Part shown: positions 3,136 to 61,179 of the stretch, piece by piece
Numbering within the stretch: the stretch's first letter is position 1
Layout of the letters: every line of letters begins with the position of its first letter
Source of the DNA: Stylophora pistillata
Taxonomy: Eukaryota
DNA length: 64,000 nt
Assembly: GCF_002571385.2 (NCBI RefSeq)
Contig: NW_019217948.1
Span: 427,548-491,547 of the forward strand
Direction of reading: 5' to 3'
Notes under the pieces: generated by a model
What the model was told of the DNA's origin: nothing
The model's input: only the letters and a program-made list of their open reading frames with translations
Databases searched by the model: none
Position numbers and translations under genes: made by a program

Positions 3136-3225
3136 TGACGAAGGGCTAACGTTCGGAAACGTCAGCTTCTTAACTCTTTACGGTAGCCAATTTACAATTT
3201 CAACTTATTTCATATTATCAAATTA
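3136..3225 (+). mobile_element. Degenerate Penelope-like pLTR tail fragment with decayed hammerhead core
   Basis: TGACGAAGGGCTAACGTTCGGAAACGTCAGC...CCAATTTAC matches the tails at 9942, 22921 and 42952. Confidence 0.75.
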
Positions 3226-3311
3226 CTGTATAAGTGTTATTGCTGGAGAAAAGTAGCTAACAGGACTTTGAAATCATGAGGGTGAATGTATCTATGTGGA
3301 CGTCACAGTTT

Positions 3312-5731
3312 TCAAGATGAGCAATATCCTCGAACTATCATACAGTTAGCAGTTAAGATACTAGCGTCAAACTTTGCCATTCCAGTGTGCGTGGTCCAGC
3401 TGGGGTCGTCGTCCTCTTCGTGTACTTCTTTGCGCCATCTTGTTCGTCTGTTTTGAAACCATGTTCTAACTTGGGCTTCAGTAAGGCTTATTTCCGTGGC
3501 TAGTTTACACCGTCGAGACTTGGAGATGTATTTCTCGTTGATAAACTCTTCTTCAAGTTTCTGGAGCTGTTCTGGCGAGAAAAGAGGCCGTTGTTTCTGT
3601 CTCTTGATATGTTTACGAGGTCTTCGTGGGTTTGCATAGTTTGCTGTAAGTAATTCAGTGAATAACATTATAAGCATTGAACTGCAACAGTAAATATTTG
3701 GTCTCCAAAAGAAAAGAATAAATTGATTTGGCACCTTATTCAAAAAGTAACAAGGAACTAAGACCAGAAGACCACAGTATGTGCCAGTTACTACAAATAA
3801 ACATAGGATTTTTCATACTCAAATTTCTGCATTTCTCCAGTTCGTAGAAACGATGCATTCGGAGCTATAAAGTGCCTATTGGACTGAGAAGTCAGAGTTC
3901 AGATGTGAGGAGTTGTCTACTTAACGTTTCCTTGCATTTTCTTTGCTCCTCATGACCTTCATGTCTGTTGTGATTTTTTTTTTTTACCAAAAGCCTGACT
4001 AGGAACATGAGATGCCATGTAAATGAGATGCCATGGAACATCAGTGCCTGTGTGATAATGAGTGCTTCTCACCCGCTACTAACGTAAATTTCCACACTCT
4101 CTTGGTGATGAGATTGAGCGATGTCAATTTCCACCTGTATCACAGGTTACGGTAAAAATTAATATGTTCTTTAATCTAAAAATGTCGATCGATATCACAA
4201 TAGTTTCAGTGAATCAGTGGAATTGACTGCATCTAGGGAGGATCCCGTTCAATCAGGCAAACCAGTGATTAGCAAGTCAATGTGTGCCAACTCAGCTTCT
4301 GAGGTTTCATTGTATTTTAATTAAACTAAGTGGAGATGTTTTCCATTTGTACGTATTATCACTAGTGTGCATGTGAGTGGCGAACACACGAACCCGGCGG
4401 AAAAGCTTATAGCTTACTCTTGGACAATAAAAACGGAACATCCGCTAGCGTCCTCCCATCTTCCGTCCACTTGAGCTTAAATTTTACGCTTCTGGAAATC
4501 AGTTCGAACTTTCCAAAATATTTCCGAAAGTGATTGATAATTTTAGCCATCGCTAATCATGTTTAGGTAATTCAGTTAGTACCTTTGCGGTCGTTTTCGC
4601 AACTGCTTTGTTACATTTAAACAATACTGTTGTGATTACCGATGCAGTCTCTGAGATACAAGTGTCGGTTTTTTTCCTCTTTCAAAAGCTTGCAAACAGT
4701 GTCTACAGAAACAATGCCAAAGGGTCAGATCATGGGAAACCGGCTTCTGTAAAATAAGATGAAACTTCTGTTTATGTCTTTTCCTGTTCTGAATCGGAGC
4801 AATTAAAAGGTCGGTAAACACCCCTTTTAATTACCCACTGAAAATGTAATGTTTCACGGAGTTCCTCTTCGAGTAAATAAATGTGACACTTCGCCTTTTT
4901 TCGAAAAATTATACGGTAGGGGCCTTTTGTCAGCCTTATATTCAAAGACACATTTCTGATTGTTCGCCTCCTTTTGTGTGTATTTTGGGATTCTGACGAA
5001 AACACTCTAAAATGTCACGGCCTAGGCTAAAGGTTTGCAAGCTATAGAAATATATATTTCATTGCGAGTATGATGCACTAAGTGGGCAAGCTTTTTTCAG
5101 CATCTTTTATAAAGAGAGCATTACCCTAAGAAGTAACCTTTGCTAAATAGAACGTGATCGACAAGAGAGAATACGATTTATAGATGCGTTTGTTTAAACT
5201 TAATTCAAGTTCAGAAATTGCATTCTGTGGAGCTGTTTATGAAGTGAAAGTAATGCTCTCCAAGAAGGTGCTATTTATTGTATCACGTTGAGACGGGTCA
5301 GTCATACATGATTTATTAGAGTTCCGATGGGAGTCTGCTAAGAAAGAAATGTTGCACCGCTATACTTACGTATTAATTACGGAGTTTGGAGGCTTCGTCA
5401 TATCTTTAAATTCTTATTTAAATTATAACTAACCTGGAGGGATGCCATGCCTCGAATATCTCGTAGCATAAACCCATGCCGGCCAGACACTGTTTAGGTC
5501 GAAGTTACCTTGTGCTACACTCAAACCTGTGCCCTCTTTCACGGGGCGTGTTTTCTTCGCCGAGTTTTCGCTGGCAATAGAAAGGTTAGCGACTCTTTTA
5601 TGTTCCTTGTCTTCACCTCGTTGGTCGTCGCAGAGACTTAGCAGGTTTTTAATGGAGAAAGGATGATTTAAGACGGATTTGGAAGGGATGACAGGGGAAA
5701 AAGCCGAGCCATATTTCACTCTGGAAGACAT
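3312..5731 (-). CDS. ANTP-class homeobox transcription factor, engrailed-like/NK-like; 2 exons (5731-5434, 3643-3312), about 209 aa
   Basis: ATG at 5731. eh1 motif HPFSIKNLL; EH2-like WPAWVYATRYS at 5485-5453. A phase-1 intron (G|GTTAGT...TTACAG|CA) joins in frame to the homeodomain at 3602-3423 (RQKQRPLFSPEQLQKLEEEF...QVRTWFQNRRTRWRKE). TGA at 3314-3312. Confidence 0.9.
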
Positions 5732-7821
5732 TGCCTCAACCGATTATGTTCGTAGCCAGCTAACCTTCTTACAAGCAGTCAACTTCTCGGCTGCTTGGCA
5801 CCAACATAAGTTAGTTTGGAGACTCTAGTCTCGCGCCTTGATAACCGGCTAATTATGACTCCGGAATACTGTAACTTAATTGGCTCGTTGAGACACTGTA
5901 AATAGGTTGCGGTCAGGAAGCAGACATCTACACTCCCTTTGAACTCCCGTGCTTTCGTCGGAGAACGCTTTCATCGCTTGTTGGAACAAACTTAAGAGTC
6001 ATACGGCGCAGTGAAATATAGACTAGATTTGGTGGGAGGGAGCAAAGTGGTATAAGTTATAAGTAGTGGGATTAGCCACAAGTAAATAAAAACAAACATC
6101 GCCACGCTAGCTTTCGTACTGAGGAGCACATTAAAAATATTCCGGTTCTCTTTGCAAGCAAACAGTTGCACAGTTAAACTTTATTTTTGGCCACTTTCCG
6201 GACGGGAAATCATAATTTGCAAAGCATTTGAATAGGTATTCAATGTAGAGACAAATTAATCTGGATTCGTAGATTGCGCACATAACATCGTGTGATCCAA
6301 TTCGGAAACGAATAGAAAGTTATTTGAGTCTACAATTGTAGGTCAACCTTATTCTGGCTAAGATCGTTTTTCAAAGAAAACAAAGTGCTAAAAGCAGGAA
6401 GGGTTAGGCTGGATAACTGCACAATGAAATTTCTAACAATACATTAGACCATGTAATGCCCATACGGCTCACGACATCCCTGCTGTTTAGGAGTAGTGGC
6501 ATCTTGTTTCTCAGCATGAACTCTGAGTGTCTCGACCACCCTTTCATCGCAGTACTTGTATAATGTTCTCCAGAAAATCTTACGAAGAGCCCGGGAAAGG
6601 GTTATGTCGGTTATGAATGACTTAGAAAATCAGAGTGGAGTAATTTTTTGTTTCAATGTTCCAATTTTTTCTCACAAAATTTGAAAACACAGAAAGAGGA
6701 TATACTTTCCCTTCCGGTTCACGTTAATGAAGTCTCTTGTCGTAGAAGAAGCACTGGATCCCAATGATCTCTTGATCAAACTGTAAAGAATAGGCCGGTT
6801 GAACTCAAAAATGATGATGCTCACTCATTACCAAACCTCGCTTAAAAAGAAAAAGAAAAGAACGCTTTATTCTTACTATACGGGCGCCTCAGACGTGCAG
6901 AAAAATCAAGACCTGGTAGATGCCATACCCCCGGAGGCTTACGATTGAGTGTTAAGGTGACACCGCGCCACCATTTGATAAATTTGTCTCAACCGACAGC
7001 ACTGGGAACAGTTTCTCACGAAAGATCAAAATAATAGAAAATCGCCAATGTCGGATGCATAGTATTTTAACTTTTAGAAATATTAAACTGGTTATAAATA
7101 TTAAAGATCAAAACTCAAGAATAAAGCTATTGATCCAATGTTATTCTCATGTTTGAGAAAAGCCAACTTAATTTGAAGTTATCTTCAGGCACGACTTCCC
7201 TCAAGACCACAGGATATGAGAAAAGCGATATATGATATTAAGGTATAAATTGAAGACTTTACATTGACTAGCGGTGTGTGCCGTACTGATGACGGGAACA
7301 TGTGGGTGTGTCATTCTTAATGAAAATCAACACGAACGTTTTTCAATCCTTGTCAAGGCAAGAACGAAACAGTTACCTTACGTCTGGTGCGTCGTTCATT
7401 TGTAATTATTCACGAACCAGTACTGCGTACATTTCCCCATGTTAACGCACCTCATTTTGTTTGGTAATTGTTTGCAATTGATGGATTGGAATTTAAAATC
7501 TCTTTACTGCCGAGTAAAAGCATTCCATCACGAACGATCGACTGTTTTCATTGAAAATAAAGCCGGAAGGAAGAACCTATGTTCTATGATACTTTCCATC
7601 CTTTTCCAGTTCTTAAACTGAAATGGCCCAGAGGTAAATGTTGTCAGAGTTTGATTTGCGCCACAGGTGGCAAGTAGCTCTACAGCTCTTGAACATTGAT
7701 TGCTCCACGGGGACTGTACCTTTTACCACTCTCTTTGATTGTGAAATCACAATCTAACTTTGGGATATTCTTCGCATCAACATATTTTCACTGAATTTTT
7801 CCTCCCAAGTCATCCTATTGT

Positions 7822-8133
7822 GTGGAGGCGCGGTGGCCTCATGGTTAGTGCGCTCGACTCGGGATCGAGTGGTCCGGGTTCGAGCCCCGGCCGGGACATT
7901 GTGTTGTGTTCTTAGGCAAGACACTTTACTCTCACAGTGCCTCTCTTCACCCAGGCATATAAATGGGTACCGGAAAATTTAATGCTGGGGGGTAGGTAAC
8001 CCTGCGATGGACTGGCATCCCATCCAGGGGGGAGTAGAAATACTCCTAGTCGCTTCATGCTACAGAAACCGGAGTTAAGCACCTGCCTAATGGGCCACTA
8101 GGCTCGTAAACAGACTTTACTTACTTTACTTAC
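7822..8133 (+). mobile_element. tRNA-derived SINE (SINE2) with CORE-like central domain
   Basis: Pol III A box (TGGCCTCATGG) and B box (GGTTCGAGCCC). The central TGTGTTCTTAGGCAAGACACTTTACTCTCACAGTGCCTC...AAATGGG resembles the CORE domain. It ends in a short TTAC/ACTTT repeat tail. Confidence 0.8.
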
Positions 8134-9344
8134 ATCCAATTACTCTATTCAAGACTGAATTCTGTCTTTCATTTCAGGAATAATAAAATGTACAGTTACA
8201 AATCAAACTAACTTGGGGCCGGCAAAAACGGTATCCATCTTTCCATTATTTTACCTTTGTGGCGAAGTGTATAACTGTGCTTGCTTTGTAAGATCGCTTC
8301 CATTTGTTCTTCTAACCTAACAATTTGTGCTTTGCTCTTTGCAATTTGCAACATTGCTCTTAGAATAAATAAGTAAATAAAAAATGAATGATTGAAAAGT
8401 GAATAAAGCTGTGAATAATTGTCTTGTCAATCAAAATAAATCACTTCTTGAAGCTCGAAACTCGCAGTACAATTTGAATATGAAAGTAGATTCGTTTGAT
8501 AATTATATTGAGCTACATAAATTCTTTATTCTTGGTTTTCAACTTGAATTAACACCGCAATTGCGGTCAATCCCACAAATTGATGAAAAACTTGTGATTT
8601 CTAATATAAACCTGTCAGGAAATTTAACATCTTTATTTACAACTGAAATCCTTGAAAAGTCCATGGGTCAACGTTGTACAACTTATCATAGACAGCTCTT
8701 CAAGTGTTACTGTTCTTTTTTTGTCATTTTACCTATGAAAGTATGAAAACAACTGTTTGAAAGAACAATGAAACATTCCATCACGAACTTGTGTTTTCTG
8801 TAATAATCCGGAAGGAAGACCAAGCATGTACGTTCAAGTTTACACTCAATCAAAATCCATGCCTGAAAACGAAGAATCAGCTTTCAGTCAGTTCGAGACG
8901 ATTAAAGAAGAATTTGAAAGTGTACAACAAACGATCGGGCTCTACCCCAAACTGCATCCGATGCATCACAGGAAAATCTCCCATATTTGTCACGCTTCTT
9001 CGAGAAATCAGTATCCTCGTAATGAGGATTTCCTTTGTTGATTTACACCCTTAACTCGAGCAGCTGTTATTTTCCCTTAAAAGGTAGGATAACTTTCGTT
9101 GTGCTCACAAAGTCGTCAAAACAAAAGTACTTTACCCTCTTTCTATCGTACTTCAACTTTTTTTTAGCCGAATGAAATGATACCTGAGCGAATGAAAAGA
9201 GAAACTAAAACTTCGCATTCAATAAAGGAGTATAATTGAAAATATAATAGTCGTATAGCAACAAAAGTTGACAATCAACGAAACAATCGGTTTAGGAATC
9301 ATTATAAGATTAAATCAAGAGTTAGGATCTAGTTAGACCAACTG

Positions 9345-10030
9345 CAGAATGCCCCTCCTCTTGGTCAGAATGCCCCTCCTCTTGGTCAGAATGCCCCTCC
9401 TTTTGGTCAGAAGTTCTTTTGAGACTAATGACCAACCAGGCACTTTTAAATGCGCTCGTGCACGATACAAAACATGTCCTTTCATTCACAACGTTGATAA
9501 AATATCGGGACCTAAACGATCCATTAAGATCACCGATCACTTCACGTGCACCTCCGCTAACTTGCACTTATTGCAAAAAGATATACATCGGCGAAACAGG
9601 CAGAAGACTAGGTGACCGATTCCGAGAACACCTTCGAGACGTGGAAAGGAATGACAAGGACACATCGAAACCAGTCGCTAGACATTTTAATTTACCTAAT
9701 CATTCTAAGCAACATATGGCAATCTGCGGTCTTTCCTTACACTTAGGTAGCACGGAAAGCCGTAAAAATCTTGAACAAAAGCTCATCTTTCAAACCGGCA
9801 GTCTAAATCCCACAGGGATCAACGAACGCTTTTCATTCCACTAATTTATTCTTGTTTTTCTCGTTGCCATGTTCCCACCAATAACGTAGCTCCATTTTCT
9901 GCCTTTAAAAGCACACACAACCCACAATTCCTCTATTCGCTCCGACGAAGGGCTAACGCTCGAAACGTCAGCTTTTGTAATCGTTACGGTGGCCAATTTA
10001 CCATTTCAACTTTGTTGATATATCCAAATT
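9345..10030 (+). mobile_element. 5'-truncated Penelope-like retroelement: GIY-YIG endonuclease C-terminus plus pLTR with hammerhead motif
   Basis: Frameshifted ORFs encode KCARARYKTCPFI and CTYCKKIYIGETGRRLGDRFREH...PVARHFN...GINERFSF. The tail carries CCGACGAAGGGCTAACGCTCGAAACGTCAGC (9942-9972). A 21-bp triplication marks the 5' junction. Confidence 0.9.
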
Positions 10031-10045
10031 AAGAGNNNNNNNNNN

Positions 10046-10571
10046 AGATACAATGAAATATATGAAGTTCATATATTTTGAACTGCGGTATTAGATACGT
10101 ATGATGCACGATCCTCGCAGTAGATAGCGCTATTTAAGCAATAGCGAAAATCAGACCTGAAAAAATTCAGGCCTGTACGGGATTCGAACCACTGACCTCT
10201 GCGATACTAGTGCAGCGCTCTACCAATTGAGCTAACAAGCCAACTGGGAGCAGGCCGTTAAGTTGACTCGTAATAAACCCGTGAAAGTGATAAATCAGAT
10301 ACAATAAAATATATGAAGTTCATAGATTTTGAACTGCGGTATTAGATACGTATGATGCACGATCCTCGCACTGGATAGCGCTCTTTAAGCAATAGCGACC
10401 TCTGCACTAGTATCGCAGAGGTCAGTGGTTCGAATCCCGTACAGGCCTGAATTTTTTCAGGTCTGATTTTCGCTATTGCTTAAATAGCGCTATCTACTGC
10501 GAGGATCGTGCATCATACGTATCTAATACCGCAGTTCAAAATATATGAAGTTCATATATTTCATTGTATCT
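10046..10571. repeat. tRNA-derived element: 251-bp tandem unit plus inverted copy forming 170-bp palindrome arms
   Basis: The unit starts at 10046 and again at 10297. 10046-10215 is the reverse complement of 10402-10571. It contains a tRNA-like cloverleaf. Confidence 0.85.
10169..10241 (-). pseudogene. tRNA-Thr(AGT)-like pseudo-tRNA head of a repeat
   Basis: GGCTTGT/ACAGGCC acceptor stem, A box TAGCTCAATTGG, anticodon loop CTAGTAT, B box GGTTCGAATCC, followed by a T6 run. The T-stem and anticodon stem have mismatches. Confidence 0.65.
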
Positions 10572-10699
10572 GAATTATATTCTGATTCATAAAAAGGGAG
10601 AACTGACTTTGATGAAATACCAAGAGACACCTTACCTACTTTCTCAAGTATGACGAGTGATTTTAACCTCGGAAACTCAATGAAGAACATTCTACTTTA

Positions 10700-25848: not shown

Positions 25849-27269
25849 TAGATCAGTAATATTGGACCGCCCGGGTCTCGATATTTTCTCGACGCAAAGA
25901 TAACTGGAGTCCATGGGCAATTACACCTCTCTAGCTCCTTACCTTTGACAATGAAACTCTCTCCATCCAAACGGACTAATTATATCTACAGTGCTGAGCT
26001 GTGGAAAACATTCCTCTTGATGCCAATGTTAGACAACCCACAACAAAAATCAACTGATAAAGCCTCTTCCGGAGAAGTACGAAATGTCCACAACATACTG
26101 TGGACATACAGTTGTAAAGAACCCACCCTATGAGAGGTCAGTCTCTGAGCTGTAGTCTGGGTGCTAGACCTCATGTTAAGCCTAGAAATAATCCACGATG
26201 ACGTCTCCAGGAGGACAGGAATTCTCGACTGCAGTCCCACGGCAGCTAACATCCAACAACCCGTTTAATCTATAGGAGGACCGTAAGGAAATCAATCCAT
26301 GCACTTCGATTGGTAGCCAGGAGAAATACGGGGCCATGTCTGAATTTCCTTGTACGGTATTCGTTAAGCCAACAGATCAGCAGTGTTCAACGTAAAAGGA
26401 CACATTTTTTCTTTCAGACACTGCAAAGCTATTCACTGCTACTACTTCCTTCTCTCCAAGACTGCTCGGCAGTCACCTTATGAGATATCTTCCCGCAGGT
26501 GAGTGAATAAGGGCGTCAGTCATGATAACTCACTTGTTTTATCTTCCATTACTGCTGCACAGTACCAAATCGCAAATTTTTTTATCAATCATTAATGGAA
26601 CATGAAATTTCTTACATTACTTACATTACGGGATAACTAACACAACGCAAGATAATACAATACAATACGATGCAATACTTACATAACTTATAGTATAACA
26701 CTTTGTAATTGTTACTTTGTAGAAGAAAAGAAAGTAGTTAACTTTTTAACATTTTTTAAACTCAATTTGCGAAAAACACTTATTGCAATAACCCACTTAC
26801 TCTACTAAAAAAACGCATTACACTGATAACAATACAACTACTTCCACTTACACTAATGCAGAATACTGGGCCAGGTTGTTCGAAAGAGGGTTAACGTTAA
26901 TCAGGGATTAAAAGTTAACCTAGACTTTGAATTCTCAGGTAGAGGAGCATCTATAAGAGCTAGGGCTTTTTTAGTTTTATCTTAATATGACTCGAACCTA
27001 ACGACGAAGAAAAAAACAAACAAACTGTTTTTTTCAGTCTGAGATTAAAGTACTTTTCCTCGCCTATAAAATTTTATTTTTACCCGTCGATGAACGTTGA
27101 ATAGAAGTCGAAAAACCTTTGGAGTACTTGTTTTTTTTCAGGATGATAAGCAGCAGTGACCAAGAAAGAGGGATCCTTTTGAATTTCTGCTCCCGCTTCC
27201 CGCCCTGATTAAGATCCCAGTTCCCGCCCCCTGTTCTCCCGGGCTCCCACCCCCCTGTCCCCCACCACT

Positions 27270-27950
27270 AAATGACGCTTACGCACAGTGATGACGTACA
27301 TGAAGATGGTTGGGATTAAGCTTGGTGAAGAGGTAAAGTAAACAGATGTGCTATTCGGTGAATGACAGGGTTTTCGGAGAAGAAAAGAAAACTCCGAAAG
27401 CTACCAATAGGAGTAGAACCTACGACCTTCCGACTAGTTCTTTGGACGCTCTACCACTGAGGTAGAGGAGACTAGTGGAAAATTAGGCCGTTTAAATAGG
27501 TCCATGGTTACAAATTTCCTCCACATTAGAGGATAATCGGAATGCCGATGGGTGATGACTTGTGGCAAGTTGTGATGGTTAGCTAGGTTCATAATGACCA
27601 ACTTCCTGCATACTGCACGGATAGGAATGCCGATATCTAATGCTTATACGCAATGATGATGTAAATGGAGATAGTAAATTATATTGCTAGGGATTTAAGT
27701 GAACTGAGACGTTCTTTAGTAAAAGACCGTCAAAGGCGTGCTCGGATAAAAAAAGGAAAGTCTGAGTGCTCCCCAGTTGTCGAACGTACGACATTCCGAT
27801 TAGTACTTCGGACGCTCTAACACTGAGCTATAGCCAGTTCCTATCAGTTAAGCTAGGCCGGGGAACTAGGTCCATGGCGACAAACCTCTTGCATGCGACG
27901 AGGATAGGAATGTCGATATGTAATGATGATTAAATAGGAAGGGTCGAAAA
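27270..27950 (-). repeat. Degenerate tandem array of tRNA-like units (left part)
   Basis: tRNA-like units (minus strand AGCTCAGTGGTAGAGCG...GGAAGGTCGTAGGTTC) at about 27410-27473 and 27778-27833, with shared spacer motifs. Confidence 0.65.
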
Positions 27951-27979
27951 GGAGGAGAATGCTTATTATATTACGGGGA

Positions 27980-30842
27980 GCAATTGCACGCTACAAAATA
28001 TCGACGCAGACCGTGGCTACAAGTCAAATTCCCAAGTTCTTCTGTGTTATTTCCAGTTATCTACAGACCGCCAGACGCCGGTGAATTCTTTGATGTTCTC
28101 GGTGCCACCTCAGAAAAAGCTTGGCTTAAAACGTTTAATATAATGCTACTTGGGGACTTCAACGGTGACTTTAAGGCGGAATCTGAACAGTGTACTAACG
28201 CCAGAAAACTATGCTCTACTCTTGAAACGTTTAATATACAATATGTGGTGAATGCAAACCCTAGATAAACACAAACAACGAGTACGTTGATAGACCTTAT
28301 TATCACAACAAGGACTGATCTCATAAGCAAGTGTGGTGTTTTGCCTTTGAGAGTTTCAGACCACACTGTGGTATACGCAACGAGGAAGCTGAAGAAGAAA
28401 GGCCGCAACCGTAGTACATCAAAACAAGAGATTACAGGAAATTTGACGCTGAAAATTTCGGGAGGAACAGAATCTACACCTTTCCATGTGGCGTTAGTTT
28501 TTGAAGTGCCAGATTATGTCTTATGGGCATGGCAAACTTTGTTTAACAGAATTTGTGACGTCGCCCAGAAAGAAGTCAAGATAAGAAGTAAACTGGCTCC
28601 TTGGATAACAAACGAGAGGCGTTACATGATTAATAAAAGATACAAGATTTTCAAGGCAGCAGTTAGCACCAAACGTCCTGAGCTTCGGTCAAAATACAAG
28701 AAAGGCAGAAATGTGGTCACGTCAACTTTGCGAACAGCTAAAGCATCCTAGTTTACCAAAACGTTTGAAGAAGTAAGGAAATATAGTACTTACTGGAACT
28801 TAATTAACAAAGCTACAATTCGCTCAGCACGTAACAGAACAATAGGCCTCCTTAAGAGAACCGATGGCAGTTTTGCTCTTATGGAGAAAGAAAAAGTAAA
28901 GATAATGAACGCATACTTTTCCCAGATCCGTGAGAAATTAGCTAAGTCACTACCAATGCCACCGCAGCTTGCTTCTGTAGATGGCAACATATCGCCTACC
29001 TTAAAGCCCTATTTCAATCACAAACCGTTCTGTTGAAGAAAAGATAAATAAACTTAAGACTAATAAGTCCGTTGGACCTACTGACATCTCGCCTAAACTT
29101 CTCAAATTGGCATGGGAAAGGCTATTGTACCAACATTGGTCAATACAGTACAATACAATACATAGCTTATATAGCGCAACGCTTCTCAAAGATCCAGCGG
29201 CGCTTTACAATGATAGTGATAGAAAAATATCATCAATTAAGAATTAAAGTGAATTAAAAAACTAGTGGTCAACCTTTATAATTACAGCATTGAACGGAGA
29301 ACTGTCTTTTTCCCTGTGAAAGACTGCTCGATTAACTCCGCTTTTCAAGAAGGACGATGAAGCAGATTGTGGAAATTATCGACCTGTCTCCCTTTTAAGC
29401 GTACCTAGTGAGATCTTGGAAGCAGAAATAAAGGATAGACAGATGCAGCACGCTTTCGTCGACAATCAGTTAACCACAGAGAAGCAATGGGCTTACCGAC
29501 GCGGCCACTCTACTGAGCTCTTCCTTGTACATCTGACAAAAATGTGGAGGAGAGCTTTAGACTCCGGTAATGTGGTCGCAGTAGCTTTTGTGGACTTCAG
29601 AAAAGCGTTTGACGGTGGCTCACACGATGTCTCAGTGAAGAACCTGAAATATAATTTTGCTATTACGGGCATGTCGCTAGATGGATTAGGGACTACTTGA
29701 GTGGTAGAATGCAGTTCACTCTACTTAATGGTGTCAAATCTGACATGTTACCAGTAACAAGTGGAATACCACAAGGATCTGTATTAGGCCCTATTTTGTT
29801 CACTTTATTTGCTAATGATCTGCCCGCCGCGATAACCAAGGGATCTTTGTTTATGTACGCGCACGATATGTTAGTTTTCTGCACCTAGGTGGTGCCTAGA
29901 GAACCGCCTAACACCTAACCCGGCTAAGAGCGAAATTATTTTAATTAGTACACAAGACACTATTAGACCACTACCTCCAGTACTTTTGGGTAAATCGGTA
30001 CTAAGCTTTGTTACAAAATCTCGTCTTCTTTGAATGATCGTGAACGACAAGCTTACTTGGATACCACATATGCTAGAACTAAAGAAAAACTTTGCAAAAA
30101 AAATAGACACATTGAAGTGCTCAAGGTTTCTGCCCAAATATCCTTTTAATGTTCTATTTTAGTCTAATATTACCTTCTGCGAAGTATGATATTATTTTAT
30201 GGGGTTTCAGTACAAATTCAGATCTTCTGTACTCAATTGAAAAATCTCACGGTAGAGTAGAGCATCTGGGAGAGCTCTCAACGTTGCGGGATGGGATACA
30301 ATCAGTTTCGATTACAAATTTCAAATATTTAAACTATTTTATAGAGCAAGTAAAGTCCCACTACCTGAGTGTCTAATTAATAGCATATTCATACGACGGG
30401 AATGTAGCTACTCATTAAGAGTTCAAAAAGCAATCACGACACCTAGATTCAATTCGAGATTGTTAAAAGACTCACCGGTATATCGAGGTTCAGCGGTATG
30501 GAAGTTTGTTAACCATCATGTCAAAGGTAGTATTGACCTCAAGAAACTTCGTAGAGTACTCAGGAGAAATGATCACTTCAGGTGCTTTGCTTTCACGAGT
30601 TTATCGGGTTCAATGGTTAAGAACAGATTAACTGATTACACGTATTTTTAAGAAGATTTTATTAGCTTCTTAGTTCGCATTTTAAGAATTGTAATCTATT
30701 AGAATGTTGTTAGAAATGTGTTTTAGTTATAATTAATAGTTTTTAATTGGACGAGTAATTATTTTGTTAGTACACGGCCCCACAAGCTTTTTAGCTTAAT
30801 TCTTATCGTGTATGAATAAAGATTCTAGTCTATTATATTCTA
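27980..30842 (+). mobile_element. 5'-truncated decayed LINE (CR1/L2 group), ORF2 pseudogene with APE and RT
   Basis: APE motifs YRPP, LLGDFN, IDLI and SDH. RT motifs [32 protein letters not shown] and MYAHD (YADD). Multiple stops and frameshifts. The 3' tail has a TACACG/CGTGTA stem, AATAAA and TTCTA repeats. Confidence 0.9.
29144..29265 (-). mobile_element. L2-type 3' tail fragment inserted in the LINE
   Basis: Minus strand GTAAAGCGCC...GCGCTATATAAG followed by (TATTG)n. It is flanked by a TGGTCAA duplication (29137-29143 and 29266-29272). Confidence 0.6.
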
Positions 30843-30849
30843 TGTATGG

Positions 30850-31430
30850 AGATGATATATTTTTAACCTGGTGGAGATGTTGCTCAGTAAATAGCACCGG
30901 CATACACATAGGAAAATAGGAAAATCCGAGTATTCCCCATTGTTGTCGAACGAACGACCTTCCGATTGGTACGTCGTACTTCTTACGCTCTACCACTGAG
31001 CTAGAGGAGACTCATATCAAGCCAGGCCTTTGAACTAGCTGCGTAGGTGTAATGATGACATTCATGAAGATGGTAAATTATAAGGCTAGTGATTAATTAA
31101 GTGAAGTAAGATTTTGTTAATTGAATGACGCAGGCATACTCGGAGGAGAAAAGGAAACTGAGTGCTTCCACAAGGAGATGAACTTACGACCTTCCGATTA
31201 ATACATCAATGTGTGATGCTTGTGCGTAATGATGATGTGTATGAAGATGGTAACTATTAAGCCTGTTGATTTAGGAGAAAGAAGATGTTGCTTAGTAAAT
31301 GACACAAGGAAACTCATAGAAAAAAGGAAAATCGGGATGCACACAACAGAACTCGTACCTACGACCTTCAGAAGAGAACTTTAGACGCTATATCACTAAG
31401 CTATTGGAGATTTGTTTAGCTAAGTTTGAA
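30850..31430 (-). repeat. Degenerate tandem array of tRNA-like units (right part, continuation of 27270-27950)
   Basis: Same unit at about 30943-31012, 31173-31200 and 31348-31410. Confidence 0.65.
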
Positions 31431-32469
31431 CCAAAATGACCCAAAATGACCTTGAGTGATGTCTTGACCCAGAATGATCGAAACTATCCTACATTGATGA
31501 CTAGAATGACGTTTAAACTTTACTAGAAGTGTACAGGAAACTATGCCACGAGCAAGGAAAGCGTACAAACAAAAGATAACTCTGTGGCCTCCCTTAAAAA
31601 TACGTACACCAATCAAAACCTCGTCGCTCGTTTTTGATTATTTGTACAATTTGGTGACGAATAACGTAAATTAAGTTAAATGTTGTTCACTGAATAAAGG
31701 ATAGCTCAACTAATATTGGCTGGCCATATTACGGTTGACGGAAAAATTCTTACAATTTTGATTGTTGGCTATTTAATCATCGGATTGATGCTCTGATGGA
31801 TGCCCTGCTCCAAAAGCTCTTTAATGTAACTCTCTTTCTAGCTAGAGGAAAGGTTCGATAAAATAGGAGGCTATGGATGAAACGTGAGTTCTTTCCACAG
31901 GTAATTAGTTTTGATGGATTATCATGTATTTTGCAGGTAGACTGTATTTTTTTGTGGCTACTGCCTCCTATAGTAGGCGAATCCACGTATGTCATAGTTG
32001 TCGAGAGAGTGAGTGTGTGAGTCAATGTAACATTAGTATTCCGATCTTGACCCAATTTTGACTCGATGTTTCCTGTTGGTAATACTTATTTTTTATGGAG
32101 TATCTTAGTAGCTAAACATTAGCACTAGACACACAGCTGAGTTCTCTCCTTTTGTGATTTCTGGCTTACAGCCACTAGCACATTATGTTTTTAGTTCTTG
32201 CCGTAACACTTAATGGAATACAGCAGAAGGCGATAAACATCACAATAATTTCAGGATTGCAAAAATATCTTAAGAGGCGTGATCGGCGCATCATGAAGCT
32301 AAGAGGAATTTTTTTGCTTTGAAGAGAGAGTATTTTACAATTTTAATCAGCAAATTATGTAGATCCGAAGATATAATCTTTTCAGTTCTTGCCGTAATAC
32401 TACAAAAGACGATAAAAATCTCAAAATAGTTTTACGGTGGCATCAATCGACGCATAATTTTATAATGAT

Positions 32470-32843
32470 AATTGAACTGAGTGGAGTGCAATTTGGGCTG
32501 AAATCATACGTGTGATTTGAAATCACAAGTATGATTTCAGACCAAAATTGCATGACACGAGGTTCAATTACCACTTTATTACATCCATTTTGAAATTGCC
32601 CAAATACAGGACTTAGTCAATTCAAATATTTTATTGATGCAGTACTGAACCGGAACCGGAAATGCTTTTAAATCTTATTTTGTATGCAAAACAGAAAGAT
32701 TTTGACGCCATGTGTCAAAAACTCAGTCAAGCGTAAAATGATGTTCTTTAGAGCAAAAAATGGTGCGATTCGTGAATAAATCGCACCAATTAGAGCCAAT
32801 AAGGTTACAGGGACCACCAGTGATTTCAAAGTGGTGTAATAAA
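32470..32843. repeat. Probable interspersed element with internal long hairpin and second inverted-repeat pair
   Basis: Hairpin AATTGAAC..TGCAATTTGGGCTGAAATCATAC / GTATGATTTCAGACCAAAATTGCA..GTTCAATT. Second pair TTTATTACATCCATTTTGAAAT / ATTTCAAAGTGGTGTAATAAA. Confidence 0.55.
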
Positions 32844-33160
32844 AATCAAAACTTTACCTTGCAGAAATATCTCAATAGATATGATCTGCACATCATGGAA
32901 GCTTTGAAAATTTTACTGCTCGAACATTGACTTAAGCCGAAAAAAGCCGCTTAATTTGTGAAGCAAGCAAGCCGCGAAATACTTGAGTTTTTCAACAGGA
33001 ACGGGGGATTAGTGGTATGGCGAAATATCCTAAAACGCAGAGTGCCTTGTTGTGTGATACAAAATTCTCAAAATATGGAATTGCAATAAAAAAAGAAAAT
33101 CATTCATGATTAACAGACGAAATGAAAAGAAGCATAGGTAAAGATTGTTGGGGTCCAGAG

Positions 33161-33168
33161 GAGTTTGA

Positions 33169-33214
<46 letters not shown>

Positions 33215-33412
33215 TGTGGGTAAAAGTCGTGGGTGTGATTAATACTTAACAATAACAATAATCATTTAAAATACTAGTTATAATAATACACAAATATTAT
33301 AAAATCCTTGTCATTGTATCAGCTCGGTTTAGTGAGCCTAATATTTCATTGATTTCATCCAACAGAATTAATTCATTTCACCCAAAAAGAAAAGTGAAAC
33401 CAAAGACTAAGC

Positions 33413-33446
<34 letters not shown>

Positions 33447-34746
33447 AGGGTCATTCCAAAGAGTTTGAGGAGTTTTGTTCAGGTCAAACGCTTGATCAAC
33501 ACACAAAAAAATTATCTAACACTGTAAAGAGAGAAGTGTTAAACAACGTTTTTAGAACATGAAAGAAGCTTCGAGGATCAGAAACACGGCTATTGGCCGT
33601 GTTCTTGAATTAAAATGAAATTGTGCTCTCAGTGCCGGTTAAAAATGAATGAAGTTTCAAAAGTAAAAGTATATCCCTCTGCTGGTCAGGGAAAATAAAG
33701 CTTGTGTTGATCAATGACATTCAGACAAAGAGCCGAATGCCTCATCAATTGTCATCTCCGTATCGCGTACCATCTACCCTGCATCTAAGAAAAAAAAAAT
33801 CAAGTGAAACAGCGAACTGTTGCAAGATAAGCCGATATATAGATAGCAACGTTGCAACGTTAGTTGCAGGTCTGGAGATATTGGCTCCAAAGTTTTTCCA
33901 AGGCACGAAAATATAAAACCTCTGGTATCCAGTGTGCGGTACAATCGGGAACCGGAAATCGCAAGCCAATGTTAAATTGGTCACGACAACTGGCATCGGC
34001 GACAAGAAATTAAACGAAGAACCAATTAGTACAATCTTAAAATTTTTCTCCGTCCATTTAACTGGCCAGGTCCTTTTCTAAATCATAAAATAAACGAGAT
34101 ATGAAGGATTATTGAAATAAGTAAATTAATAAATGAAGAGGTTCTAATAATTTCAATTTTTAAACGATTCATTTCTTATCTGACAAAGACCAGACTCTGC
34201 AGAGTTGCGAAATGTGACGTACTCAAGAAACATACGTTTCATTGTTCGTCGAGAAGTATTGCATTACTTCACGGTAACTACTGACAGTCATGTTTCACGT
34301 CTTGTTTTGAGACACTTACAGGATAAATTTTTGGAAAAGAAGAGTAACAACGGTTCAAGTCACGTTTCGCGAAAAAAAGCCAGTCATTTCGCAATTTCCA
34401 TGAAGAAAAGCCGATTCAACGTTCACGGCGATATAACCAAATCACGTTTAAAACCAGCCAAAGGGCCCTTCACAATCACGATAAAACCCTTTTCCCCTAC
34501 AAAAATAACATTAGCAGTGTGCTATTAACATTATTAAATATGAGCTCTTAACCATTAATTGTTATGTATTACCCACACCCACACCCACGACCCACCACTT
34601 GTACCCACTACCCACGACCCATAGTCTCCCCTCGCAGCCGTTCTTTGTCTCGGGATCCCTGTTGTTGGGGAGGGAGACACAGGGATCCCGAAACAAAGAA
34701 CGGCTGCGAGAGGAGACTACACGATCCACGACCATTAGTCAAGCTC
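33161..34746. mobile_element. Non-autonomous Mutator/foldback-like DNA transposon with 9-bp TSD
   Basis: Termini GAGTTTGAC / GTCAAGCTC; subterminal inverted (C)GTGGGT repeats; perfect TSD GGTCCAGAG at 33152-33160 and 34747-34755. Confidence 0.85.
34622..34719. mobile_element. 98-bp palindromic mini-MITE nested in the right TIR of the Mutator-like element
   Basis: TAGTCTCCCCTCGCAGCCGTTCTTTGTCTCGGGATCCCTGT ... ACAGGGATCCCGAAACAAAGAACGGCTGCGAGAGGAGACTA. Confidence 0.75.
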
Positions 34747-37700
34747 GGTCCAGAGTATTGAGGAACCATGAGGCTTTGGACCGAGCTAGCCCCTTTAAAT
34801 TTATATCATATTACTATAATTGTTATTATTGTTAATATTAGTATCTGTTACGATATAATCAATGCTTGAATGTCAATCAGGCAATAAATTCTTGAATCAT
34901 CTTTCTCTTGTGGGACAGGGTACTCATAAATATGTGGGATGTGGCAGGAATTTCTGTTTTGTATGTGAGAGATCTGTTCTGCAACATTACCTTCGAGCAT
35001 CATTATAGAACCTCTAGCTCTTTTTGATGTTATAAAATTTGTGCGATATCAGAAGCCACATACAGTCTTTAACCGTCCATTTTAGACTTAAGAAACTAAA
35101 CAACGAAAAACTGCTTAGATAGAGTGCTAAGGAATTGAAGGCATTTTTGCACGGGCAGTGTCCATTGCAGTCCGCGGTGGGTCTTCTCTTCGCTGAAACG
35201 ATAAACGTTATCTGCTTGTCGTGCACCCCATAGCGAGAGATAACCATGCATTAATGTTCACAAGCTGTAACTAGGTGCACGCCAGAAAAAGTCCATCAAT
35301 TACGACACAGGATATTTCAATTCTTCTTGATAATTGTCAGTTATTGACAGCTAACTCTTTATCAATCCCAGGCGATCCGCCAAAGTGTCTGAGGTTTTCG
35401 CTATTAGTATGGTGTTGTACAGATTTCATACATGCTTTGATTTCTGGATATTCTAAATTTGTAGCATTTGATGCTTAACGATCAGTCCTTAGCTAATAAC
35501 GGAAAGTCTTGGGAGGACTGACTAAACACGTTACCATAATCTGGGTAAATAGAAAGGTTTTAACTCGTAAATGTAAAATTGTGGAATTTGAGCGCCAGCA
35601 TTTCCGGGATCTAATTGCTTTTGAGCTGATAAAAATTGCAATTATCAGTGCTAGTAAAGTAACAATGCATTAGAATCGAGAAAGAAATTAGGATTTTGAT
35701 GCTGTAAAGATAATGATGTAGTCTGTTTAAAGCTTGTCATAAGACACTTTTCTTATGGCAAATGACATGAAGTTGCTTAGTTACATTATCTAATTATGTT
35801 TATTGCTGTTTGCTAAAAGTGTTTCATGCCGGGGTAAGACTCGACATTGCACGGCGTGAAATGTGCTGCACGTCAGAATGATCATTGGTTAGGTCAGGAC
35901 CTTGGCGTAATCCAAGTATGTCACAAATAATTTTCACTCAAATTTGATTTTCACTCAAAACTCCTTGGTCAATTAGAACAAGTCCATTGATCTCAATGAG
36001 ATTTTATAGTTGAGTGTGAAGATCGGCAACAAAGTTGTGATCAAAATGGGTGGGGTTAGCACGATGACGCTGCAGGTGAAACAAAAGGATAATTGGCTTG
36101 AAAAATTGAACAAGAAAGTCTATGCCGACAGCTATCGGTGAATATCATCTGTACGGTGATCTTTGTACTGATGACATAGAAGATATATCATGATGATGAT
36201 GGTAATAGCGTCATTTGGTTAACAAAGGCAAGGAGAATCCAAAAACTACTTGCGATGTACAAAGAAAAGTCACTAGACCAAACCTGGGACTATATCAGTT
36301 GATAAATAGGCAAACTTTGCCTGCGATTGGAAAAAAGGAAAAGAAGAAATTGGTATGATTGTCACTGAGCAAGGTTTGGAGTACCTTTTAGAAATAGTAT
36401 AATAAGCTCATTTTTTCTTGAGAGTTTCTTCCGCGTCTCTATTAGTACTAGTCACAGTGGAACTTTTGGCGAGTAATATCTGTTATAGCTGTTTTCTATC
36501 ATCACTTAATAATTATGGGTTCAGGAATCACGACCACTTATGACCACTAATACTATTTGAGATCAGTTTTTCTTTCCTTTTCCGATCAGGAGCCAACGAG
36601 AATATCAGATGTCAAGTCTGATGGCGCCTGGGCGCGGGCTATGACCAAACCCAAATCAAGGACCGCCAACTTCTTTTGGTGAAAAACGCAGATAAAAGTA
36701 AATCGTATTGTGGCAAAAGAAGCCGATTTATGTACTCTAACTTTTCTTAGACTGACAATTTGTGAAGGACTTTATCCAACTCAAGTTTCATCAACCTAGT
36801 ACCCTTGCCTAACGTTTTCAGGTCATCTGTTTTCTTTTCTACATTTCATTCTATTTATTCAATTTTATCTATTAAAGCGAGGACTCAAAAAGTGTAACAG
36901 TAGAATGTAGGAGCTGAGTTTGTGTCCAAGTATGCAGATCATGATTTGCAAATGAAAAAGCTTATCATAATCCTAGTTTTCCCCCTTTCTTAATTTTCCT
37001 TAGAACTGTCGAGTACCGTAACGAAGGTATTTTAATTTTCAATGTTGTTTGCGTGCAGAAATTTACTTTTCGTCCATGAATTTGTAATTTGTGAGTATGG
37101 CATATCAAAGAACTGTGTTTCCTGTCGCTGTTTACCACGCGACATGTAATTGTCAACAACAGCGCCGCCCTAAGAGGCACGAATTCAATAACGACGGATA
37201 ATCCTTGAAGCATGCCATGAACTAATGAAAGCTCTTCAACATAAACACTTGAGGGCTGTAGTATTCTGTGATTCTAGTAAAACGAAAACAGTCAGTTATT
37301 CCCTGACTGTTCTGTGACAAACTCATAGGTGTCTACTGTAGTCCAGTTCTAAGAAAGCGATGTATTTAGTTTAATCGGCTCAACTGAGCTATTTTTGTAT
37401 ATTTAGATCACGAGAAATAATAGCTCAGCTAATCGGATAATCCTTCCGCTCAATTCCCGCAGAAGGACCTCTTATACAGCCAGGTGACTCATCGTTTTTT
37501 GCTCTTAATACTGAGAACAGATAGCGCCATCAAATATTCTGCACGAAGAGCGCCATTTTAACTTGCACCTCTTTTTATTTGGCTGAGGGCTTCTTGGCCG
37601 TGCTGACTCTTACTTTGTTTCGCAACGTTATGACTCACATCGGCAAGTTAAATTGGCAGTGAATAAGTCATTGTAAAAAAGAACTCATATTCAGTTGCCT

Positions 37701-38395
37701 ATATTTACTATTTCACTGAGTTTGCTGGAAATATTAAGTTACCAGAAGTTTCATCACACCCACATCATTACTTGAACTTAAATTACTTCATTCATCTGCA
37801 ACCTTATTTATGTCTGGAGTTAAATTAAAAAACATATAGCATTCATTAACACTAAGGAGCTCACTCGAGAAGTGAATTAATGAATAAGTGTGTCCTTTCA
37901 ATGAGTACATGCGTGAGATCGAAGCCAGTATTTGTAATGTTCTGTTTTTAATGTAACCGCATTAAGTGTTCGTTTACAAAACAAGTTCGAAAAAGGAAAT
38001 ACAGAAAAAAGAGTCTTATTTCGTTCATTATTGAGATTTTGGACTTTCTGTATCAATACTTTGCTTCCCTACAATGCTTTGCAGCAAGTATTTTAAATTT
38101 AAGTATAGCTTCAAAAATATGTTGTTGACGTGCTTGCCAGAACAGGCTGAGCTTACATTGCACTCTTCAGGCCAGTACAATGCTTGAAAAGCACAGAATT
38201 TCATATACGTCCTGCTACAGAACCCGGCGGAGAGGTCAAAGTACAACAATTTGGATAACAGTTCGAACACTGAATGAGGCATCTAAATTTAGAGCCACGA
38301 GGTCCAAGAGGGGCTTTTAGCTTAACATGGCTAAATCAATTAACACCAGTTCAAGTGAAATACCTGTCTGCCACGCCACAATTTGGTTTATTACA

Positions 38396-40626
38396 CTATG
38401 AACGTATCTCGTTGAAACAAGTCTGTATATACGTATAGGCACGGGAGCTTGCTGCAGGCGCTGACAATTCGTCATTATAGGAACTTGTTCCCGACAAATT
38501 TTGGTGACAGTTCTTGTTTGTTTGAGATACTGTTGTGGCCACTTGATCTTGCATTTCCTTTCTCCATTTTGTTCTTCTATTTTGGAACCACGTTTTAACT
38601 TGAGTTTCTGTAAGACCCAACTCTGTGGAAAGCTCTGCACGCTTGCTCTCAGAGATGTAACGACGCTTTGTAAATTCCCTTTCCATCGTTTGTACCTGGT
38701 TTTGGGAAAATAGCGGACGCTGCTTCTTCTTTCTAGAGAAACTTCTACGTCTTGGAAGATTTATATATGGAGAAAAACCTGCCAAAGGAATAGCGCATGT
38801 TTCCAGTTCTGTATGTTTTTAAATTAATGTGACAGGCAAGGGAAAAAATGAAAGAAGTCCAAGGGGGTAAGATTGTAATTCCCAAAATTGTTTCTACCTT
38901 AATTATACCCAGTATAAGAAGAATTTCAGTTTTCATCGAGTCTTTATTATCTTGCCAGTTGGGAGAAGCACCATAGACTGTTTGAGAGCTCAATAAAAAC
39001 CGAATTGATTCCCAAAATTTGATTTGGTTTATTATAATTGTGCACACTTCTTAAATGTCTGTCTACACTTTGCTTTAGAGGTCACATCTTATGCAGTCTT
39101 CGTGTGTTTATTTCTTTTCTTTTCCGTTCTCTATTTGCAATAAAATTACCAAGTCTTGCAACTCGGCTCCGCAATTGGAAACTTTTTCAAACAACGGTGT
39201 TTCCATTTCAAAGAAATATTTCTGTTAGTACTTTCTCGGCCGACAGATTTTAAAGCCTATTGCATTCAACGAAAATACGAATCTTAGAATTTTGTTATGG
39301 CTTTGGCTGTAATCTAGATATATTTAGTTGTATGAACAAAAACTCGTGAAGGTGCCTATTGTAAACAAGTTGATTCTTTTTTAAATGTTCAACGCTAATG
39401 CTACAAGAATAGGTTGGTGAATGAGACTAAATTATTTGTCAGGGTGTATTACAAAATTCAGAAGGAAAGGATGTCAAACGCTTCCGTGTGCGTAGCGCCG
39501 CAATTAGGCAACTCAAAATATTGCGCGTGTACACAACAAATGTAACGATCTGCAGCCACTCTATAGCATTATCTGGAAGAGCTTCTGTACATAAGAGTGT
39601 TCAAGGCCCAAGTTCCAGTACAACCACAACGCAATGGGCTTGAATATCAATGGTTTCAACACCTTGGAATTTTGACAAGTAATAATTCAAACATGAAAAC
39701 TTGCCAAACTGTGAGCAAACCGCTTTTATGGCCACTCACTCGGAAGTTAATAGTAAAAGAAAACCAGCTTCGCGCGGGTAAATTCAGCGTTCAAATCATA
39801 ATGTACGGACAAGAAAATAAAATAATTTCCTTTTGTTAGCGTTATGAAGAAAAAAATCGAAGGATTTACCCTTCAATCCTAAAGAGTGATAGTTGCTAAT
39901 TCTAGGAAAATAATTCCTGATCAAGTATCGATTGTTTCGTTTCTACTTTAAAGCGGAATTTTTGTCAATTCACTTGAATAAATCGAGAATCTTTGGCCAA
40001 GGTGTTTTCATCTGCAGACAACTGTTGCTTAACATCGCTTGCATCGACGAAATAAGCAGAAACGTCAGTCATCCTCCCCTTCAACTTAACAACCATTAGT
40101 AGAGAATGCAAACTGCTGAAAAAAACTGTCGCAAAATCGAACCAAAAATTCTCACGACTCATTTCTTGTTTGCTCGCTTCTGTTTATAACAACAAAATTC
40201 CAGAGAAGGAAAGCTCTCTACAGTCTAAAATCCAACTTCGCAACAATATTCATCAAGTTAACACGAAGCAGTAACTTTGCACTTACCATGGAAGTGTTCA
40301 TAACTTTGCATAAAACTTGTGTTGCAAATCCACGTGGGAAAGTTGGCCTGTGCAGTGGGATCTGCTGACCAATTTAAACTGATGCCACTCAGTGGAGAGC
40401 CCAGACCAGCGTAAGGATACCGCATTAATGGCGGCGGATTCATGGCGTAAGTGATTGGAGTCACGATGGGTCTTATAATGGAAACTTTTGCATCTTCGAT
40501 TTCTTCTCCTGATACTCTCGGAAACGCAGTCAAGGCTCTTTCATCTTGGAGGTTAAGAATGTTCTTTATGGAAAACGAACTTCTTCTCGGGGCCTGAAAA
40601 TAGACATCTCTGTTTGCTAAGTCCAT
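38396..40626 (-). CDS. ANTP-class homeobox transcription factor, paralogue of the 3312-5731 gene; 2 exons (40626-40287, 38778-38396), about 240 aa
   Basis: ATG at 40626. eh1 SFSIKNIL; hexapeptide-like FPTWICNTSF; phase-1 intron G|GTAAGT...TGGCAG|GT. Homeodomain at 38731-38552 (KKKQRPLFSQNQVQTMEREF...QVKTWFQNRRTKWRKE) is identical to the first gene at 37/59 positions. Confidence 0.92.

Positions 40627-49780: not shown

Positions 49781-61179
<11,399 letters not shown>

Follow-up and report, generated by a model that had tools for sequence, protein, structure and literature searches.

The stretch of DNA analyzed here comes from the coral Stylophora pistillata (NCBI RefSeq assembly GCF_002571385.2, contig NW_019217948.1) and corresponds to C165:427548-491547 in an assembly of 398 Mb. 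We refer to its full length of 64,000 nucleotides as the window, and positions are counted from its first letter. Three intact homeobox genes were identified within 37 kb of the window, namely a Gbx gene on the plus strand and two flanking genes, designated A and B, on the minus strand. With moderate confidence, we read this arrangement as a microsynteny conserved among corals: two paralogues of an anthozoan Abox-type homeobox family stand on either side of Gbx, and their linkage to it is a remnant of an ancestral En/Abox-Gbx neighbourhood. The features of the three genes are as follows.

3312-5731, minus strand: gene A, whole, intact, two exons.
5434..5731, minus strand: gene A exon 1, with the ATG at 5731, ending in phase 1 (sequence reading and Pocillopora mRNA contigs).
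5639-5659, minus strand: eh1 motif FSIKNLL of gene A, in exon 1.
5435-5485, minus strand: EH2 motif WPAWVYATRYSRHGIPP of gene A, in exon 1.
3644..5433, minus strand: gene A intron, GT donor at 5433-5432 and AG acceptor at 3645-3644, phase 1.
3312..3643, minus strand: gene A exon 2, coding 3643..3315, stop at 3312-3314, with the RRPRK arm and the C-terminal MIVRGYC.
3423-3602, minus strand: gene A homeodomain, with E17, E19, K28, R30, and R52 (Pfam Homeodomain, E 1.3e-19).
16844-17874, plus strand: Gbx, whole, intact, two exons.
16844..17108, plus strand: Gbx exon 1, ending in phase 1 (Pocillopora mRNA contigs).
16862-16882, plus strand: eh1 motif FSIESII of Gbx, in exon 1.
17486..17874, plus strand: Gbx exon 2, coding to 17871, stop at 17872-17874.
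17578-17757, plus strand: Gbx homeodomain, with L28 (Pfam E 2.2e-24).
38396-40626, minus strand: gene B, whole, intact, two exons.
40287..40626, minus strand: gene B exon 1, with the ATG at 40626 (same structure in P0288, the orthologue from Oculina).
40555-40575, minus strand: eh1 motif FSIKNIL of gene B, in exon 1.
40288-40341, minus strand: degenerate motif FPTWICNTSF... at the EH2 position of gene B, in exon 1.
38779..40286, minus strand: gene B intron, 1508 nucleotides, GT..AG, phase 1, skipped by a polyA RNA contig.
38396..38778, minus strand: gene B exon 2, stop at 38396-38398 (joint present in an RNA contig of run X1).
38552-38731, minus strand: gene B homeodomain, with E17, E19, E28, K30, and R52 (Pfam E 6.2e-21).

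The introns of A, Gbx, and B are all of the GT..AG type, in phase 1, and located upstream of the homeobox, and Pfam analysis of the second exons revealed one homeodomain in each gene and nothing else notable. The splice models of all three genes were confirmed by RNA contigs, which also document transcription. The Pocillopora orthologues of A (P0002, 210 amino acids) and Gbx (P0022, 217 amino acids) are represented by RNA contigs with uninterrupted coding sequence, to which the window exons align with only the split codon between them, the predicted joints being exact. For gene B, several RNA-seq runs of S. pistillata contained 30-50% of the words from this region, and a polyA contig of run X1 (1770 nucleotides, depth 24.5) omits 1508 nucleotides at 38776-40285, a cut that can be shifted by 2 nucleotides and equals the predicted B intron.

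Within the gene A intron, a non-coding block at 4458-4610 aligns with the Oculina orthologue's intron (L001:11105-11265) at 81% identity across 162 bp. The remaining intron is mostly diverged between these corals, and the block is a candidate conserved regulatory element.

A six-frame scan of the window for the helix-3 motif detected exactly three homeoboxes, at 3444-3461 (minus), 17719-17736 (plus), and 38573-38590 (minus), and a Pfam PF00046 search over the whole assembly detected no homeobox on scaffold C165 other than these three. Because the 149 homeobox matches across 398 Mb correspond to about 0.014 further homeoboxes expected per 37 kb, chance clustering is implausible. A and Gbx are oriented divergently with about 11.1 kb between them, which is a minimum since an assembly gap intervenes, and Gbx and B converge across 20.5 kb. 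The initial annotation, made from the sequence alone, had described three intact homeobox genes in 37 kb, each with an N-terminal eh1 motif and one phase-1 intron upstream of the homeobox, with A and Gbx divergent across about 11 kb and Gbx and B convergent. This description was upheld by both scans, the reading of motifs and exons in the sequence, and the RNA contigs.

The middle gene is Gbx, as first named. A search with its second exon returned 1016 relatives, of which every named bilaterian one was Gbx, unplugged, or CHOX-7, and the gene fell within the Gbx clade with support of 97/92 in a 123-row homeodomain tree. It also carries L28, given as the Gbx homeodomain state in a preprint by Copley (2023, bioRxiv 10.1101/2023.03.14.532566).

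Genes A and B share 37 of 60 homeodomain residues as well as the N-terminal signature QRPLFS. Orthologues of A were found throughout Scleractinia at 77-95% identity (85-95% for A exon 2) and in sea anemones at 59%, and they keep the eh1 motif, WPAWVYATRYSRHGIP, the RRPRKP arm, and the C-terminal MIVRGYC. A profile of nine full-length A orthologues was compared with 1.84 billion representative proteins, with multi-homeodomain merges discarded, and retrieved three groups. The first contained about 20 clusters with QRPLFS, including the B orthologues, from corals and anemones where the source was named. The second was bilaterian, with a homeodomain of the form DRKPRQAYS...KYLSVSKR...TWFQNRRTKWKKQ, and the third consisted of true engrailed proteins, whose score came mostly from EH2. 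The bilaterian DRKPRQAYS group comprised echinoderms, molluscs, insects, a tardigrade, a nematode, and an ostracod, and no vertebrates. A HomeoDB-based alignment (PMC6050708 supplementary file 4; see also PMC10726417) lists this homeodomain as Abox for the fruit fly (CG34031), a beetle, and the honeybee. The B orthologues were found through this large profile search and the cluster listing; a word search with the first exon of B returned the window itself and one Pocillopora exon-1 open reading frame (ORF), and nothing more.

Two side observations concern this family and the profile search. A third family member in the coral genome lies at C116:226207-226434 (L015:5058-5492, minus strand) and resembles B (62-67%) more closely than A does. 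Additionally, many top-scoring database "proteins" carry 5-10 homeodomains; these are probably merged models of tandem arrays, and they skew a ranking by total score.

In the tree of 123 rows and 60 homeodomain columns mentioned above (tree 1), the A orthologues were grouped at 100/99, the whole cnidarian family at 88/90, and the cnidarian family with Abox at 82/73, and engrailed formed a separate clade at 100/99. Tree 2 added 18 ANTP homeodomains of the same coral, among them NK1, two Nedx-like genes, Msx, Hmx, Nk6, Rough, Mnx, and Emx/Not-like. In this tree, the cnidarian family (41 rows, A and B included) was recovered at 99/94, and engrailed was again separate from A and B, lying outside a clade (99/93) that united the cnidarian family with Abox and Emx/Not-like. 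A and B are thus paralogous members of a single cnidarian family, and its nearest bilaterian family in the trees is Abox, at a weakly supported node. In addition, A and B both have E17/R52 and E19/[RK]30. The E17-R52 pair separates Abox from engrailed, and E19/[RK]30 represents HOX-like polarity, according to Copley (2023). This polarity, as in En and Abox, sets the flanking genes apart from an unrelated NK family.

Characters outside the homeodomain were also compared. The motif eh1 binds Groucho, and EH2 in engrailed is a Pbx-binding motif. The former is present in both A and B and is not engrailed-specific. The EH2 of A, WPAWVYATRYSRHGIP, matches the engrailed EH2, WPAWVYCTRYSDRPS, at 10 of 16 residues (core WPAWVYATRYS versus WPAWVYCTRYS), whereas B has only FPTWICNTSF; the engrailed-like appearance is confined to the EH2 motif of A. 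A basic arm, RRPRKH in gene A of the window and RRPRKP in its orthologues, stands 10 residues before homeodomain F8, with identical spacing in Abox of Antedon, Patiria, and Notodromas, and B is without the arm and most of EH2. Counted from the first W of EH2, the phase-1 intron follows at codon 18 in A, at codon 19 in B, and at codon 17 in all three comparison genes (the Abox genes of Antedon and Patiria and the engrailed gene of Diadema). Because of EH2, the RRPRKP arm, the phase-1 intron, E17/R52, and E19/[RK]30, we assign A and B to the En/Abox neighbourhood rather than to an NK family, with Abox as the closer of the two.

The linkage to Gbx recurs in other corals and is therefore no quirk of one assembly. 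In Pocillopora damicornis, Gbx (194140-195146, minus strand) and the A orthologue (205112-207455, plus strand) point away from each other on one contig, with 10 kb between them. Oculina chromosome CM126641.1 carries a helicase gene (plus), B at 18.136 Mb (plus), an extra paralogue at 18.144-18.146 Mb (minus), and A at 18.223 Mb (plus), so that 85 kb separate A from B, and their relative order and orientation match those in the Stylophora window. Oculina Gbx (P0023) is recorded on a contig of 33,308,145 bp, the same size as CM126641.1. On a further cnidarian contig, ctg66261 (ENA ERZ25073755; 291-345 kb), Gbx at 301 kb is accompanied by three B-like genes at 329, 334, and 341 kb, at distances of 27-40 kb. 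The microsynteny that the initial annotation proposed to look for in other corals was thus found in Pocillopora for A and Gbx, in Oculina for A and B, and on this contig for Gbx and B-like genes.

Further details of these loci were recorded. The extra family member of Oculina (L014:18305-18739, minus strand) is convergent with B, Porites has the same type, and no counterpart lies between B and Gbx in the window. The three B-like genes of ctg66261 have the motif ELRxEDPPxEVPDGRL in common after the homeodomain.

The locus had been proposed to be an EHGbox-like cluster, which in chordates joins EN, MNX, and GBX. The linkage of Abox-type genes and Gbx within 37 kb holds, and at the scaffold level of this assembly the cluster is incomplete. 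A search for Mnx, Rough, and Hox genes found none on C165, which has no homeobox beyond the three. By homeodomain signature, Mnx and Rough lie 13 kb apart on C14 (678.2k and 664.7k) beside Hox-like genes, so the EHGbox group is represented on C165 by the Abox-type genes and Gbx alone. On the same basis, two Nedx-like genes were located on C168 (389.5k and 427.7k), and Hmx and NK1 on C219 (400.4k and 442.6k). The related proposal of an En-Gbx cluster older than the cnidarian-bilaterian split may survive as an ancestral En/Abox-Gbx neighbourhood, an argument already made by Copley (2023), and is not supported in taking the flanking genes for engrailed.

Several observations weigh against the Abox-type reading. 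The join of the cnidarian family to Abox is weak, at 82/73 in tree 1 and 62/9 in tree 2, and an approximately unbiased (AU) test did not reject a tree in which the cnidarian family and engrailed were forced together (p 0.254); the 60 columns of the homeodomain alone cannot fix the deep placement. Homeodomain identity to ten bilaterian Abox proteins is low for an orthologue (28-33 of 60 residues for A and 32-36 of 60 for B), and Gbx is highly conserved. When an insect Abox was searched against the coral genome, the result was a near-tie among NK1 (66.9 bits), B (66.7), Nedx (65.2), and A (64.5). The EH2 of A is nearer to that of engrailed (10 of 16) than to that of a crinoid Abox (7 of 16). Finally, Nematostella has an A-like gene at 11.8 Mb and a tandem B-like pair at 16.1 Mb on one chromosome, 4.3 Mb apart, and no Gbx was found within 10 kb of either.

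These points bear first on a possible, though not likely, alternative in which the cnidarian family is the single pro-orthologue of engrailed and Abox together. It would account for the mosaic EH2 of A, with 10 of 16 engrailed residues and the A...RH positions as in Abox, and for the phase-1 intron that coral A, the Abox genes of Antedon and Patiria, and Diadema engrailed all have at the 17th or 18th codon past the first W of EH2; it is not separated from the other placements by the AU test. However, engrailed never stood beside the cnidarian family in the homeodomain trees and fell outside the 99/93 clade. Introns following a hexapeptide-type motif are, moreover, common among ANTP genes. For this reason, and because Copley (2023) reports EH2-like motifs from Abox, Msx, Nk1, and Msxlx of cnidarians as well, the shared EH2 and intron characters may be older than En and Abox.

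Less probable still is that A and B constitute a cnidarian-specific ANTP family without a one-to-one bilaterian counterpart, the adjacency to Gbx being a hexacoral-specific feature and not an EHGbox remnant. Such a family would fit an identity of only 47-60% to any bilaterian homeodomain, the ambiguous reverse search with insect Abox, and the weak Abox node. It would also fit the situation in Nematostella, where published maps place Gbx on the Hox chromosome. On the other hand, the RRPRKP arm with the same spacing, EH2, the intron position, and the HOX-like polarity at positions 19 and 30 link A and B with Abox and En, and the Gbx linkage extends over several corals and a further cnidarian contig. 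Furthermore, Abox adjoins En, which is itself linked to Gbx, in ambulacrarians according to Copley (2023). At the echinoderm Abox and sea-urchin engrailed loci that we examined, neither of these two genes was seen within 10 kb of the other, and the En-Abox adjacency described there was not reproduced.

Very unlikely, in our assessment, is the view that A and B are true, fast-evolving engrailed orthologues. This was the reading of the initial annotation, and it is implied by automatic NCBI names such as "engrailed-1-B-like" and "engrailed-2-A-like" for scleractinian genes ("ceh-9" and "HMX3" in sea anemones). We know of no convincing engrailed orthologue outside Bilateria. The engrailed-like EH2 core of A, the presence of eh1, the intron position as in Diadema engrailed, the source names, the E28 that B has in common with engrailed, and the AU p-value of 0.254 can be cited in its favor. 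Nevertheless, the engrailed signature of K17, E28, K52, and IKIWFQNKRAKIKK is replaced by E17, K28, R52, and RTWFQNRRTRWRK in A and by E17, E28, R52, and KTWFQNRRTKWRK in B. Engrail_1_C_sig (Pfam PF10525, EH5) had no match at E<=1 in the second exons of A and B, whereas a sea-urchin engrailed control carries it. Engrailed forms its own clade at 100/99, and when a tick engrailed was searched against the coral genome, A and B were not among the 27 best matches. Two published surveys are likewise without any cnidarian engrailed: Copley (2023), who searched cnidarians for EH2 as engrailed candidates, and a separate survey in which engrailed was not found in twelve cnidarian genomes. For the second exon of A, the best single-domain matches in the PDB were Clawless, BarH-like 2, Pdx1, and Tlx2; engrailed ranked mid-list, the top engrailed row was a tandem fusion, and the ranking has no diagnostic value. 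In the ESM Atlas, the nearest clusters to an A orthologue were named H2.0-like, DBX2, and engrailed-like, and the nearest cluster to a dipteran Abox was named "engrailed-1a-like" and lacked the engrailed C-terminal domain; we regard these names as leads only. The automatic engrailed-like names of A- and B-type coral genes are therefore misleading, and Abox-type is the better name.

The remaining features concern the intergenic regions.

10036..10045: assembly gap between A and Gbx, 4.3 kb from the ATG of A and 6.8 kb from the ATG of Gbx.
10046..10578: satellite-like repeat, the 533 nucleotides to the right of the gap, with a 251-bp period and internal inverted copies.
27900..30400, plus strand: degenerate interspersed repeat with reverse-transcriptase-like ORF fragments, not a host gene.

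That the cluster is an artefact of a scaffold misjoined at the 10036 gap can practically be dismissed: scaffolding produced the join, and a high-copy satellite borders the gap, yet in three Pocillopora assemblies both flanks follow in unchanged order and orientation, and in P. damicornis Gbx and A are 10 kb apart on a single contig. Specifically, positions 36-9363 and 13960-16878 are collinear with P. damicornis RCHS01003372.1, P. verrucosa CM071756.1, and a third Pocillopora, GCA_942486045.1, and the two stretches of these three that were fetched are free of N. The join across the gap is well supported by this collinearity and by the single P. damicornis contig, and no reading frame is at stake because the gap is intergenic. 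The intervening segment, 9363-13960, which holds the gap, is without a Pocillopora counterpart in the three assemblies and for this reason looks like a lineage-specific repeat insertion. The satellite at 10046-10578 was recognised from its genome copies and by self-alignment; it occurs as hundreds of tandem copies, 97-99% identical, on dozens of scaffolds, and the left flank of the gap is not part of it. Tandem Repeats Finder reported nothing near the gap except a 21-bp repeat at 9345-9412. The satellite abutting the gap was the probable cause of the gap.

The repeat at 27900-30400, present in at least 55 genomic copies at 69-89% identity, would be a retroelement, judging from its ORF motifs. 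A piece of about 125 bp inside it, at approximately 29141-29267, has many copies of its own that are 94-98% identical, which suggests a young short element inserted in an older one. Pfam gave nothing at E<=0.01 for eight intergenic ORFs, including the fragments at 27900-30400, and no further host gene was found between A and B in the stretches examined, which consisted of repeats; the initial annotation had likewise recognised none. Beyond B, the next host gene in the window is a multi-exon DEAH-box RNA helicase (GETGSGKT...DEAHER, DHX8/Prp22-like) at about 50110-55420 on the minus strand, probably spanning about 48-57 kb. The neighbour of Oculina B is likewise a helicase, of 1196 amino acids, with S1, DEAD, Helicase_C, HA2, and OB_NTP_bind domains. 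Another short gap in the assembly was noted at 43071-43082, outside the three-gene block.

Returning to the reading of the locus as a conserved linkage of Gbx with two Abox-type paralogues, gene A would be the conservative member, with eh1, an engrailed-type EH2, the RRPRK arm, and the phase-1 intron directly after EH2, and gene B would be a diverged duplicate with E28 and a decayed EH2. By analogy with eh1-bearing homeodomain proteins of known function, A, Gbx, and B may act as sequence-specific transcriptional repressors dependent on Groucho/TLE, and A would probably be assisted by Pbx via EH2. The family would be related to the bilaterian Abox/engrailed pair, closest to Abox and not an engrailed orthologue. 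Its linkage to Gbx may be a remnant of an ancestral En/Abox-Gbx neighbourhood, as already proposed by Copley (2023). A bolder version seems doubtful to us: that A keeps the ancestral En/Abox state (eh1, a long EH2, RRPRKP, and the phase-1 intron), that A, Gbx, and B are held together by shared cis-regulation as a working remnant of a pre-split EHGbox cluster, and that A is a Pbx- and Groucho-dependent partner of a Hox-Gbx segmentation code.

Compared with engrailed and the EHGbox cluster, the coral locus has in common the eh1 motif, an EH2 in A matching at 10 of 16 residues, a phase-1 intron placed as in sea-urchin engrailed, and linkage to Gbx. In contrast, A and B lack the engrailed homeodomain signature and EH5/Engrail_1_C_sig and fall in a separate clade; and unlike the chordate EN-MNX-GBX arrangement, coral Mnx is not on C165 but on C14 with Rough and Hox-like genes.

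Bilaterian Abox (CG34031) resembles the coral family in its eh1, the EH2-like W-P-x-W, the RRPRKP arm at the same distance, the phase-1 intron after EH2, E17/R52, and E19/K30. It differs in that only 28-36 of 60 homeodomain residues are common, and at position 28 Abox has V where A and B have K and E, respectively. In addition, the homeobox of echinoderm Abox is interrupted by a second intron, absent from the coral genes, the C-terminal MIVRGYC of the corals was not seen in Abox, and the Abox tail RLKIAQRQGLW was not seen in the coral genes. To our knowledge, Abox is absent from vertebrates and tunicates.

The closest known system is the anthozoan Abox of Copley (2023), so that our finding is real, modest, and essentially known, and its evolutionary argument is already contained in that preprint. 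EH2-bearing genes were reported there in Acropora digitifera and other anthozoans and identified as Abox orthologues by reciprocal searches and phylogeny, together with further anthozoan duplicates without EH2 and with E28 ("other putative Abox genes"), the adjacency of Abox and Gbx, and an inferred ancestral En/Abox-Gbx cluster. The fit to our locus is residue for residue: gene A has eh1, EH2, and E17-R52, and gene B is without EH2 and has E28. As far as the accessible text goes, it speaks of an Abox-Gbx pair and does not name the Stylophora genome among the species shown, whereas here a second paralogue stands on the other side of Gbx. Our analysis thus adds another coral with the arrangement, the second paralogue across Gbx, transcript-verified gene models, and an explanation of the gap. 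It also adds the shared RRPRKP arm and a post-EH2 intron whose phase is identical, and whose codon position almost so, across coral A, echinoderm Abox, and sea-urchin engrailed. A coral gene with a near-engrailed EH2 beside Gbx bears on the question of whether an En/Abox-Gbx neighbourhood predates the cnidarian-bilaterian split.

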